The notes beneath the pieces are model-generated. The model had not been told where the DNA came from. It did no database searches and saw nothing but the letters and a program-made list of their open reading frames with translations. A DNA stretch of 64,000 nucleotides, taken from assembly GCF_006345805.1 (NCBI RefSeq), contig NC_043019.1:17111360-17175359 (forward strand). Direction: 5' to 3'. The position numbers were made by a program, and so were the translations under genes. This DNA is from Octopus sinensis. Taxonomy: Eukaryota. This document shows positions 53,501-61,241 of this stretch, piece by piece; position 1 is the first letter of the stretch, and each line of letters begins with the position of its first letter.

Positions 53501-56500
53501 GGCCACATCGAAGAACCTCCGCCACCACGTGTTGAGCCCCCGTGGCTAGAACTAGTCGTAGTGGCTACAAATGACACAAGACAAACATCTTTAATAATAG
53601 AAAAGTTACATCAAATAACAACTGAAATGCTTTTAGTAATGACCTTATTTCTTTTCCGTTACGGTCGACCAGATGAGTTTACTGCTAAAACTTCTTCAGT
53701 TCAATGAGTGCTAACAAATTAAATTTGGACAGCAGTTAAGAAGACAGTATTGGCTTTAATCTATTGTCCTTATTTTCGATACGGTTTAAATTTTAGTCAC
53801 TGAACTTACAACGACGTCTATCATCAAAATCATCCATACCAAAGTTATCATCACAGAGCAGAGAAGCATCATGATCATCTGGAAGGTTAAAATGTCTACT
53901 TCGTTTCAACGGACGACTGTCTCCCATTTCATCGGTGCTAAATAACTCTTGACTCATAACATGCAGGGAACCAATTGCTCTGGATAAACAGAGAAAAAAA
54001 GGAAAATGATTAAAGTTAAGTTTTAATAAAGTAAACAAATGGCAGAAAATAACTAAGTCACAATCCCATCTATATCAGAGAAAGAAAAAAACAAAAATCA
54101 GTAAAAAATTGATTTTAAAAATTTCCTGCTGCCTACAGATTAAAATAGAAAACAAAAAAATGTGTAAAGTAAATAGTCTTTGCATGAAACATTCTTAGCT
54201 TTCTGAAAACCCCAAAGACTTAAATATGTTTGGAATATACAAGTACATCAGTTACCAGCTTGATGATACTCTCAAAGATTTCAACACATGCAAAATATAC
54301 AAATACTACAATTACTAACCAAAGATGCCCACCATCATCATCGTTTAGCGTCCGCTTTCCATGCTAGCATGGGTTGGACAATTCAACTGGGGTCTGTGAA
54401 GCCAGAGGCTGCATCAGGCCCAGTCTGATCTGGCAGTGTTTCTACGGCTGGATGCCCTTCCTAATGCCAACCACTCCGTGAGTGTAGTGGGTGCTTTTTA
54501 CGTGCCACCCGCACAGGTGCCAGACGGAGCTGGCAAACGGTCACGGACGGATGGTGCTTTTTACGTGCCACCGGCACGGGGGCCAGGCGAGGCTGAAAAA
54601 TTATTCAGCAGAAGCCAATTTTTGGAGCCAAAATATAAATAAACATGATCATAGAAAATACTCAATAAATGCCGTTAAACTTGCTGTGATTCAAGAATAA
54701 TGATGATGATGATGAATCCAGTGTTAAACAGTGAATCATTTTATCAACATCCCACCTCCACCCCAAGAGATGATGACTTAAATCAATGTCAAGACATGTG
54801 AGATCAATAGTCAATATTCTTTTTGAACATCTGCAAGCAGGGCTATAGAGTCGGGGGGGGGGGTCAGAAATGGAAGCAAGTTGGTAAGGAATACATTGAC
54901 TCTCATTCTGGCTAAATTCTAATCCAAAATGAGTGAAAGACGAAATGGTATAAAAATGTTGGGGAGGTAGCCGTTAGAGAAGTGTTTAAGACCAGCTGTC
55001 CATGGGACTAGCCGTATATTGATGACCTTGTTCTCAGAGCTGAATTTCTAAGGTTAGGGAAGTAAAGCTTAGAATCGAGACACTTCAAAGTGAGACCTAG
55101 CTATAAAATCATCATCATCTTCATCATTTAGTGTCCGTTTTCCATGCTGGCATGGGTTGGACGGTTCAACTGGAGTCTGGAAAGTCAGGAAGCTGCACCA
55201 GACTCCAGTCTGATCTGGCAATGCTTCTACAGCTGGATGCCCTTCCTAACGCTGAGAGTGTAGTGGGTGCTTTTTACGTGTCACCAGCACAGGGCCAGGG
55301 GGTGCTGATATTGACCACAATCGGATGGTGCTTTTTATGTGCCACCAGCACGGGAGCCAGTAATGGTGGTACTGGCATCAGCCATGTTCAGATGGTGCTT
55401 TTTACATGCCACTGGCACAGAAGCCAGTCGGGGCGAGGGAGCTGGCATCGACCATGTTTGGATGTTGCTTTTTACGTGCCACCCGCACAGGTGCCAGACG
55501 GAGCTGGCAAACGGTCACGGACGGATGGTGCTTTTTACGTGCCACCGGCACGGGGGCCAGGCGAGGCTGAAAAATTATTCAGCAGAAGCCAATTTTTGGA
55601 GCCAAAATATAAATAAACATGATCATAGAAAATACTCAATAAATGCCGTTAAACTTGCTGTGATTCAAGAATAATAATGATGATGATGATGATGAATCCA
55701 GTGTTAAACAGTGAATCATTTTATCAACATCCCACCTCCACCCCAAGAGATGATGACTTAAATCAATGTCAAGACATGTGAGATCAATAGTCAATATTCT
55801 TTTTGAACATCTGCAAGCAGGGCTATAGAGTCGGGGGGGGGGTCAGAAATGGAAGCAAGTTGGTAAGGAATACATTGACTCTCATTCTGGCTAAATTCTA
55901 ATCCAAAATGAGTGAAAGACGAAATGGTATAAAAATGTTGGGGAGGTAGCCGTTAGAGAAGTGTTTAAGACCAGCTGTCCATGGGACTAGCCGTATATTG
56001 ATGACCTTGTTCTCAGAGCTGAATTTCTAAGGTTAGGGAAGTAAAGCTTAGAATCGAGACACTTCAAAGTGAGACCTAGCTATAAAATCATCATCATCTT
56101 CATCATTTAGTGTCCGTTTTCCATGCTGGCATGGGTTGGACGGTTCAACTGGAGTCTGGAAAGTCAGGAAGCTGCACCAGACTCCAGTCTGATCTGGCAA
56201 TGCTTCTACAGCTGGATGCCCTTCCTAACGCTGAGAGTGTAGTGGGTGCTTTTTACGTGTCACCAGCACAGGGCCAGGGGGTGCTGATATTGACCACAAT
56301 CGGATGGTGCTTTTTATGTGCCACCAGCACGGGAGCCAGTAATGGTGGTACTGGCATCAGCCATGTTCAGATGGTGCTTTTTACATGCCACTGGCACAGA
56401 AGCCAGTCGGGGCGAGGGAGCTGGCATCGACCATGTTTGGATGTTGCTTTTTACGTGCCACCGGCATGGGGCTCACAACTACAATTTCCAATTGATTTGA

Positions 56501-61241: not shown

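Follow-up and report, generated by a model that had tools for sequence, protein, structure and literature searches.

Does the GTF3C2 protein of octopods carry zinc fingers, and are such fingers kin to those of the ZNF512 proteins? The question is raised by a 64,000-nucleotide stretch of the Octopus sinensis genome (assembly GCF_006345805.1, contig NC_043019.1, positions 17,111,360 to 17,175,359), here called the window, to which all coordinates below refer. This is low-GC, eukaryotic DNA with a GTF3C2-type gene on the minus strand. Within TFIIIC, a factor of RNA polymerase III, the tauB module has GTF3C2, or TFIIIC110, as its WD40 subunit. TFIIIC is known for recognising the B-box at tRNA genes, short interspersed nuclear elements (SINEs), and 'extra TFIIIC' (ETC) insulator sites. 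Descriptions of the human and yeast structures regard TFIIIC110 as a WD40 scaffold whose N-terminus is disordered. A sequence-only reading of the window had proposed that three exons upstream of the WD40 exons add a ZNF512-like finger module to this protein. The analysis reported here shows that the gene is the octopod GTF3C2 ortholog and makes it probable that it includes a module homologous to ZNF512 fingers 2–4 and the motif that follows them, a finger-bearing form that would be ancestral and have been split in vertebrates.

The window gene is the octopod ortholog of GTF3C2/TFIIIC110. When its WD40 part is searched against the Protein Data Bank (PDB) with phmmer, human GTF3C2 is found at E 1.9e-37 (8cli_C), and the runner-up, a Fizzy-related protein, at E 1e-3. 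Frog GTF3C2 (P0002) matches the same query at E 2e-44. The C-terminal blade motif ..NPN...WL.SGG.(S/A)GLVRLH.. is present in the last exon of the window gene as NFNPNFGSCSWLLSAGQAGLVRLHN, and also in frog GTF3C2 and in all long invertebrate hits. The human protein (UniProt Q8WUA4; PDB 8cli/8clj/8cll, chain C) has the WD40 propeller and pre-propeller region in common with the octopod one, together with the C-terminal 'GG.(S/A)GLVR(I/L)H' motif and a pre-propeller basic motif at the same relative position. The difference lies in the N-terminal half: human GTF3C2 has 911 residues and, as had been stated for vertebrates, no zinc finger in residues 1–451 (8cli_C SEQRES), whereas the octopod-type protein has about 1330 residues and three fingers before the basic motif. 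From orthology, the octopod protein would be expected to assemble into tauB with TFIIIC90 and TFIIIC220 and to serve RNA polymerase III.

The fingers are encoded by exons A, B, and C on the minus strand, which are flanked by pyrimidine-rich AG acceptors and GTRAGT donors (borders read on that strand, and marked here by a slash). Exon A (61092..61241; 150 nt, phase 0 at both ends; ttttcag/TGGACC...CGAGAG/gtaggt) encodes a 'WTKDCPEG' linker, a pre-finger helix, and a C2HC finger, ZF1, and ends in ...HIEWCGRE. ZF1 occupies 61101..61163 (CPQCGKEVRNFQYYQFHIEWC, C-x2-C-x12-H-x3-C, with a CPQC knuckle), and the helix before it (DNKSLKNIMKKLGKL, 61167-61211) corresponds to 'ERERLRTVLKRMGKL' in ZNF512. 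Exon B (57741..57910; 170 nt; ttatag/GATGAA...ACAGAA/gtgagt) encodes the C2H2 finger ZF2 (57836..57895; CPICNKKQRLMYMASHTNLH, C-x2-C-x11-H-x3-H, with a CPIC knuckle), a helix rich in K, R, and E, and the opening half of the basic motif (…SQRKRKAAQ-). Exon C (53810..53979; 170 nt; atccag/AGCAAT...GTCGTT/gtaagt) adds the second half of the motif and an acidic disordered stretch. The motif, QRKRKAAQK/AIGSLHVMSQELF, spans the exon B/C junction (57741..57766 and 53940-53979).

Eight residues separate ZF1 from ZF2, and the succession of an atypical C2HC finger and a C2H2 finger is the pair arrangement of the ZNF512 family. An AlphaFold2 (AF2) model of the two (predicted local distance difference test, pLDDT, 92.7) has a helix followed by two beta-beta-alpha fingers. 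The complete module runs from a third finger, ZF0 (C2H2), through an 'ALW..CPEG' linker and the helix to ZF1, ZF2, and the basic 'KRKAAxKAxxxL' motif. The invariant columns across orthologs are the seven metal ligands and the K, Y, W, and G of ZF1.

Do these fingers belong to the same protein as the propeller? Exons A to P run from 61241 to 35449 as 16 exons, all with GT-AG introns, and join into 2262 nt with no internal stop (753 residues). The proposed borders and in-phase splicing of exons A–C to the WD40 exons are borne out by the exact AG/GT borders, the single 753-codon frame, and the 8cli_C match. The junctions were placed with two relatives as guides, and the frame of each exon was anchored. 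One guide, L001, is a 2431-nt intron-less Logan contig (SRR27666078) from a relative, reached by a word-indexed search with the WD40 part. Its gene frame reads ...KMGKLNCPKCGKEVRNFQYYNFHIEWCGREEEFGECPICNRNQRLMYMASH...QRKRKAAQKAMGSLHEMTQELF...MWPSKDEDLF... and then enters the WD40 blades. Compared with the window by tblastn, its product breaks exactly at the exon A–C borders and at all later ones. The contig is free of introns across 14 junctions and holds ZF0, ZF1, ZF2, the basic motif, and WD40 in a single frame, bar a one-nucleotide slip. The other guide is a protein of Argonauta hians (GAB1610646.1, 1330 aa), recovered by exhaustive phmmer search, whose residues 586-1330 are identical to the window product at 680 of 745 positions (91%). 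Because L001 reads through and the Argonauta protein is 91% identical, the fingers and the propeller form one polypeptide. Moreover, ZF2 shares exon B with the first part of a motif that is present in human GTF3C2, which ties the fingers to GTF3C2. The fingers of exons A and B are thus part of the octopod GTF3C2 mRNA, as the sequence-only reading had held.

That reading had named as its own undoing a separate upstream transcript. Exons A and B would then be a distinct zinc-finger gene, and the fused models would be read-through or gene-prediction artefacts. Some public models are indeed split, namely a 382-aa 'ZNF512-like' protein of Haliotis and a 234-aa fragment of Trichoplax adhaerens. Contigs of the European Nucleotide Archive (ENA) encoding 349–448 aa stop soon after the motif, and L001 may come from an RNA or a DNA run. 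Nevertheless, L001 spans ZF0 to WD40 in one frame without introns over 14 junctions, exon B joins ZF2 to the beginning of the human GTF3C2 motif, every junction is in phase with strong splice sites, and the identical order recurs in more than 20 independent annotations from four phyla. A separate finger gene is therefore extremely improbable.

The Argonauta protein, annotated as 'uncharacterized protein LOC115223707', has both the module and the C-terminus of the window gene. It differs in coming from another species, in lacking the 'FGMDDFDDRRR' of exon C, and in that nothing in the window corresponds to its first 585 residues. The module occupies about residues 560–690 of a protein of roughly 1330 and is matched in the Argonauta protein at residues 586–712. 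The placement first proposed, at the N-terminus, has accordingly to be given up: the module is mid-protein, with about 585 N-terminal residues, ZF0 among them, encoded upstream of the window.

Two observations concern the relatives' sequences. The slip in L001 is a one-base frameshift in an A-run at positions 395-420 of the contig (ATAATGAAAAATGGG vs octopod ATCATGAAAAAACTCGG), probably an assembly or sequencing slip. It led the gene caller to split the open reading frame, so that the 627-aa protein called on the contig (P0001) begins at an internal Met within ZF2; upstream of the slip the contig reads ...VPCPRCDVMLGSQTSVKNHLMSVHQVLWTKECPDGSSDNKALKFIMK, which is ZF0 and the linker. Short products with ZF0–ZF2 and an RRSAAQKA motif and without WD40 are also found (P0004 and P0069-P0071, from ENA contigs of 1.7-2.6 kb; P0005, Haliotis, 382 aa). 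They could be intron-retaining or finger-only isoforms, and a finger-only isoform would be a natural intermediate toward a stand-alone ZNF512-like gene.

Are the fingers related to those of ZNF512? The evidence comes from the module as a whole. A hidden Markov model (HMM) of 163 positions was built from 22 protostome orthologs, with Trichoplax left out. It matches mouse Zfp512 at 46.8 bits in one stretch that covers positions 6-159 (154 of 163) and takes in ZF0, ZF1, ZF2, the spacer, and the motif. It matches a working copy of the human ZNF512 sequence at 49.1 bits over the same positions, and Trichoplax at 46.4 bits. The best of 17 zinc-finger decoys, which had been picked out of 1.8 billion proteins because they resembled the query, reaches 33.6 bits over two fingers only, so that ZNF512 scores at least 13 bits higher. 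The Zfp512 exons were rebuilt from a genomic contig (L002) and bore out that working copy of ZNF512. When Argonauta ZF0 joined to window exons A–C is compared with Zfp512 by BLASTP, 86 residues align (44.3 bits, E 5e-10 for a single comparison). In this alignment, ZF0 corresponds to finger 2 (..AGMKYHVMANH), the linker and helix DNKSLKNIMKKLGKLNC align with ERERLRTVLKRMGKLRC, and ZF1 corresponds to finger 3.

The placozoan protein provides a closer link. Trichoplax sp. H2 RDD36890.1, named 'General transcription factor 3C polypeptide 2' (871 aa), carries C2HC and C2H2 fingers and an RKSAVRAA motif before WD40. It was found by the octopod query through fragment P0058 (E 4.7e-4 in a 1.8-billion-protein library). 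It differs from the octopod protein in having two finger pairs that flank the motif and no ZF0, and in being much closer to ZNF512. It passes the Pfam model ZNF512_C2HC (33.1 bits against a cut-off of 27), and its N-terminus aligns with Zfp512 over 227 colinear residues (87 bits, E 8e-24), which comprise the finger pair, the motif, and a Cx4C pair. Its top PDB hits are ZNF512B and ZNF512, at E about 4e-6.

The basic motif adds a part that lies outside the fingers. An RRxAAxxA...L motif stands N-terminal to the propeller in the window (QRKRKAAQKAIGSLHVMSQELF), in human GTF3C2, and in the 22 orthologs aligned. The octopod stretch SQRKRKAAQKAIGSLHVMSQELFS has counterparts in human GTF3C2 residues 1–451 and in mouse Zfp512. 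When the human GTF3C2 N-terminus is compared with Zfp512 by BLASTP, the motif is the sole notable match (17 of 38 identical, E 3e-5). The motif, which had been put forward as a feature of ZNF512, is indeed found there, and judging by these alignments it is common to both families rather than exclusive to ZNF512.

ZNF512 and ZNF512B (PDB 2ctd, 2gqj) resemble the octopod module in their alternating atypical C2HC and C2H2 fingers, in a helix 'L+xΦΦK+ΦGKLxC' before the C2HC finger, and, for ZNF512, in a colinear order of C2H2, linker, C2HC, C2H2, and RRSAK/KRKAA motif. They differ in having no WD40 domain and three to four finger pairs, whereas the octopod fingers sit in a WD40 protein. The knuckle of octopod ZF1 is C-x2-C where ZNF512 finger 3 has C-x4-C, and octopod ZF2 has an x11 spacing. 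The pair that follows the motif in ZNF512, fingers 5–6, is absent in cephalopods and present in Trichoplax, bryozoan, and insect GTF3C2. Since the fingers are part of a WD40-bearing GTF3C2 ortholog, the octopod gene is not a member of the ZNF512 family, but carries a homologous module.

Structure and profile searches point the same way. Against all PDB sequences, the ZF1–ZF2 profile gives its highest single-stretch scores to 2gqj (26.5 bits) and 2ctd (25.3 bits), and in the multi-finger hits that rank higher, the best listed stretch reaches 20 bits. A Foldseek search with the AF2 model places 2ctd, a ZNF512 chain, first among 350,542 PDB chains.

A number of results weigh against this interpretation. 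Neither Pfam ZNF512 model hits the window peptides: ZNF512_C2HC (PF21276) gives nothing there even at E <=10, nor in the Argonauta protein (P0003), and ZNF512_zf-C2H2 (PF21367) likewise finds nothing in the window peptides or in the Argonauta protein. Both models are present in the searched library, where they annotate the 2ctd chain. The best Pfam matches of the octopod fingers, for the exon A–D peptide and for each finger singly, are generic zinc-ribbon/zf-Di19 models below cut-off. A phmmer search of the octopod N-terminal peptides against the PDB returns neither ZNF512 (2ctd, 2gqj) nor GTF3C2. By hhalign, the ZF1–ZF2 profile matches a ZNF512/ZNF512B profile at 94.7% probability, but 12 control alignments of generic C2H2 pairs reach 89–98%, which is equal or better. 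The Foldseek hit has an E of only 0.035 and serves as corroboration only. ZNF512 finger 3 is not separated from finger 4 by an intron, and intron positions differ from those of the octopod fingers. L001 could derive from RNA or from DNA, and the single-mRNA reading for Octopus is drawn from the genome and from relatives' sequences. DNA binding by the octopod fingers is expected only by analogy. Finally, no deuterostome invertebrate or basal vertebrate GTF3C2 is among the 66 hits of the exhaustive search described below.

Two further results belong to the same comparisons. PF21367 matches ZF0 of the Haliotis ortholog at 17.6 bits, which is below cut-off, and ZF0 is not encoded in the window. 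A word-indexed protein search with the spliced A–D peptide returned nothing, in a database that holds few eukaryotic full-length proteins.

These results could mean that the fingers are ordinary C2H2/C2HC fingers whose likeness to ZNF512 reflects the general zinc-finger signal together with a short basic motif of chance or convergent origin. This would account for the failure of the Pfam ZNF512 models on octopod fingers, for the hhalign controls, for the Foldseek E of 0.035, and for an HMM of the ZNF512/ZNF512B pair, whose ranking puts most molluscan fingers in the decoy range. The finger pair taken alone cannot, in fact, be told apart from generic C2H2 fingers. Yet the colinearity takes in parts that are not fingers, namely the LKxIMKKLGKLxC helix, the spacer, and the RKAA motif, and it extends over 154 of 163 profile positions at no fewer than 13 bits above the decoys. 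In addition, Trichoplax passes the ZNF512_C2HC cut-off and aligns over 227 residues (E 8e-24), human GTF3C2, which has no fingers, still matches ZNF512 at the motif, and 2ctd ranks first of 350,542 PDB chains. A generic origin of the likeness is therefore unlikely. The profile relationship that had been proposed is upheld for the module and through Trichoplax PF21276, and it fails for the finger pair and for the Pfam models on the octopod sequence. Homology and colinearity of the module with ZNF512 fingers 2–4 plus the RRSAK motif are supported, at the module level only, and the cephalopod module is too diverged for single-domain models.

Two lines of argument for kinship were tried and dropped. 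The hhalign probability of 94.7% is not evidence of kinship, given the generic controls. A conserved phase-0 intron between the fingers (CKQ/EMFTC in ZNF512 vs WCGRE/DEV) was abandoned as well, as the true counterpart, finger 3, is split inside the knuckle.

How widely is this architecture distributed? An exhaustive phmmer search returned 66 proteins at E <=1e-3 among 1.84 billion representatives, and the long single-stretch hits fetched from these were used to survey architecture. All of them have the same order: basic N-terminus, ZF0, 'H.ALW..CPEG', helix, ZF1, ZF2, charged spacer, (K/R)(K/R)KAAxKA, acidic tract, and WD40. The ortholog consensus is ..YY..H..WCGRE for ZF1 and C..C...K.MW...H...H/C for ZF2, and the N-termini often carry KRGRPRK AT-hook-like repeats. 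The layout is found in gastropods (Patella, Pomacea, Babylonia, Littorina, Lymnaea, Biomphalaria, Bulinus, Aplysia, Elysia, Candidula, and Haliotis), bivalves (Sinanodonta, Mactra, Mercenaria, and Mya), annelids (Capitella and Lamellibrachia), bryozoans (Bugula and Watersipora), insects (Harmonia, Lasioglossum, Eurosta, and Lepidoptera), and the placozoan Trichoplax. The octopod lineage and most of the non-vertebrate animals sampled have proteins of about 1100–1450 residues. Some lineages have an additional Cx4C C2HC plus C2H2 pair after the motif, e.g. YCTHEGCDVHLKDITDITQHYWTC...NCKRCPEKFSCENEALSHVKSH, which corresponds to ZNF512 fingers 5–6; it occurs in Bugula (P0038/P0122), Watersipora (P0030), Lasioglossum (P0055), Harmonia (P0059), and Trichoplax (P0073), and none was seen in cephalopods or other molluscs.

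In Lepidoptera (P0016, P0045, P0027, and others; 2000–3100 aa), the ZF0-linker-ZF1 unit is repeated four to eight times before a final ZF2, the motif, and WD40, which is a lineage-specific expansion of the module. Public names for these proteins are mostly 'uncharacterized', with a few given as GTF3C2, and NCBI calls the Haliotis fragment 'zinc finger protein 512-like'. Several GTF3C2 orthologs or fragments have misleading names: those of Patella vulgata (P0006, XP_050393372.1), Aplysia (P0032, XP_012938729.1), and Watersipora (P0030, XP_067933024.1) are called 'mucin-2', 'ABC transporter F family member 4', and 'serine-rich adhesin for platelets-like'. Such misnomers are probably driven by low-complexity N-termini.

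Taken by itself, the gene is an unexceptional ortholog, and many public gene models already show its architecture without comment. As for whether it had been described, searches of open-access papers turned up no link between GTF3C2 or TFIIIC and ZNF512 and no report of fingers in TFIIIC110; what they gave was lists of genes that mention both and other senses of the terms. A common origin of GTF3C2 and ZNF512 is apparently undescribed. Being pan-invertebrate, the architecture cannot count as an adaptation to the SINE load of this genome. The special relevance to a SINE-rich genome that had been suggested falls away: the finding does not belong to this genome alone, and no link to SINE load is seen.

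In which direction did the split run? Vertebrate GTF3C2 keeps the motif and WD40 only, and vertebrate ZNF512 and ZNF512B keep the fingers and the motif without WD40. Since the motif of human GTF3C2 stands at the same place before WD40, it is most simply explained as a remnant left after loss of the fingers. The finger-bearing GTF3C2 would then be the ancestral animal form. On the vertebrate stem, a partial duplication or fission may have yielded ZNF512, after which GTF3C2 would have lost its fingers, and ZNF512B may have arisen after genome duplication. The neighbourhood of the two human genes, which the sequence-only reading had pointed out, is confirmed. GTF3C2 lies at chr2:27,325,854-27,356,764 and ZNF512 at chr2:27,583,042-27,623,217 (PMC11997021), a distance of 226 kb, and ten genes separate the two within a single 417-kb interval (PMC2570409).

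Alternatively, the kinship could be real and its direction reversed, with a stand-alone ZNF512-like gene as the ancestral form that was fused to GTF3C2 in several invertebrate lineages. In its favour, none of the 66 hits comes from a deuterostome invertebrate, a cnidarian, or a sponge, so that the hits do not sample the root state. No such fingers are known in yeast tau91. Against repeated fusion, the fused form has the same internal order in Placozoa, Lophotrochozoa, and Ecdysozoa, and human GTF3C2 retains the post-finger motif at the matching place before WD40. This makes the reverse direction highly unlikely, and an ancestral finger-bearing GTF3C2 that was split in vertebrates is the reading we prefer.

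What might the fingers do? ZNF512B is described as vertebrate-specific and has four pairs of atypical C2HC and C2H2 fingers, which bind DNA and oligomerise (PMC11602157). ZNF512 and ZNF512B are cited in PMC13537249 as binding pericentric satellites and recruiting SUV39H, and for the vertebrate proteins recruitment of SUV39H or NuRD is known (PMC11602157, PMC13537249). By analogy with the DNA-binding, oligomerising fingers of ZNF512B, and with the contact that TFIIIC110 makes to DNA on the downstream side of the B-box, the fingers and AT-hook-like basic N-terminus of the invertebrate protein would give tauB extra DNA contacts beside the B-box. The shared motif, in turn, would dock a common partner. 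Repeat reading by the module, as the sequence-only reading had it, is likewise an inference. A more far-reaching proposal, which we offer tentatively and regard as doubtful, is that ZNF512 and ZNF512B, described as initiators of pericentric heterochromatin that are specific to vertebrates, represent the DNA-reading half of an ancestral TFIIIC110 that has become detached, whereas TFIIIC of octopods and most invertebrates would have kept it. Recognition of TFIIIC sites and ZNF512-type recognition of repeats would then be joined in one polypeptide, and the shared RRxAxxxAxxxL(Q)EL motif would serve both proteins as a helix on which a common partner docks. If so, the TFIIIC-bound sites concerned here would be tRNA genes, SINEs, and ETC sites.

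The finding would provide an origin for the ZNF512 family, which has been called vertebrate-specific. It predicts that invertebrate TFIIIC makes sequence-specific or repeat-directed DNA contacts that are invisible in structures from model organisms. It also identifies the motif common to human GTF3C2 and ZNF512 as a candidate shared interaction site that is testable in human cells. For annotation, many invertebrate orthologs now listed as 'uncharacterized', 'mucin-2', or 'ABC transporter F family member 4' can be named.

The remainder of the gene follows exon C on the minus strand. Exon D (53381..53564; acceptor tttgtag/CC) encodes a Ser/Gly-rich stretch and then MWPSKDEDLFEECLQYHTKLEVLLPAFDEFLPTRDMFYHLQ, a conserved pre-WD40 region, and is followed by exon E (52173..52285). 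The propeller starts in exon F (49688..49889; FFTGGPVWCAVWCP..QYVAV), which aligns to human GTF3C2 residues 398-496 (chain 8cli_C). Exons G (48651..48765), H (48008..48075), I (47782..47888), and J (46079..46159) come next, and then exon K (45632..45941; 310 nt), which holds the best-conserved WD40 blades. Exons L (43084..43180), M (41825..41950), N (40694..40834), and O (38546..38635) lead to the last coding exon, P (35449..35586), which encodes ...NFNPNFGSCSWLLSAGQAGLVRLHNLSGLF...HVNR and ends with a TGA stop at 35449. At the other end, the upstream ZF0 exon and the 585-residue N-terminus were sought in 61242-64000 with L001 and Argonauta, and no match was found; the 5' part of the gene, including ZF0 and some 585 N-terminal residues, thus lies beyond the window.

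The border of exon C allows some choice. The donor at 53810 (gtaagt) fits L001, and a second candidate at 53840 (G/gtatgg) fits the Argonauta model slightly better; the frame is kept either way. The 'FGMDDFDDRRR' of exon C that is missing from the Argonauta model has the counterpart NFNYEEYEEIYR in L001, which is decapodiform-like, and alternative splicing of the acidic exon C stretch is possible. A weaker alternative acceptor (ttaaag/) lies at 53588, upstream of the start of exon D at 53564.

Outside the coding exons, a few other features of the window were recorded. ARAGORN called a single tRNA-Leu(CAG) gene (8378-8461, plus strand) and no further tRNA-like element in the 64 kb; SINE saturation is not addressed by this tool. 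An open reading frame of 112 aa (10172-10507, minus strand), with neighbouring frames to about 10890, reads …LILLMSDEAHFHF…NCRYW…PLHSPKVAVWCAV…. It could be a decayed DDE transposase, but has no Pfam hit at E <=0.01.

Two introns of the GTF3C2 gene hold repeats. The intron between exons B and C (window 54330-56480) contains a tandem duplication of roughly 979 bp, in which 54492-55153 is repeated at 55466-56132 with 99–100% identity. Each copy holds three to four units of a 64–70-nt repeat with the core GGATGGTGCTTTTTACGTGCCACCGGCAC, and this repeat resembles an element of SINE or satellite type. The intron between exons I and J (window 46838-47300) contains a (GTGC)n microsatellite whose 116 copies match perfectly (100%), and which produces long spurious open frames on the minus strand in all three frames (THAR repeats).

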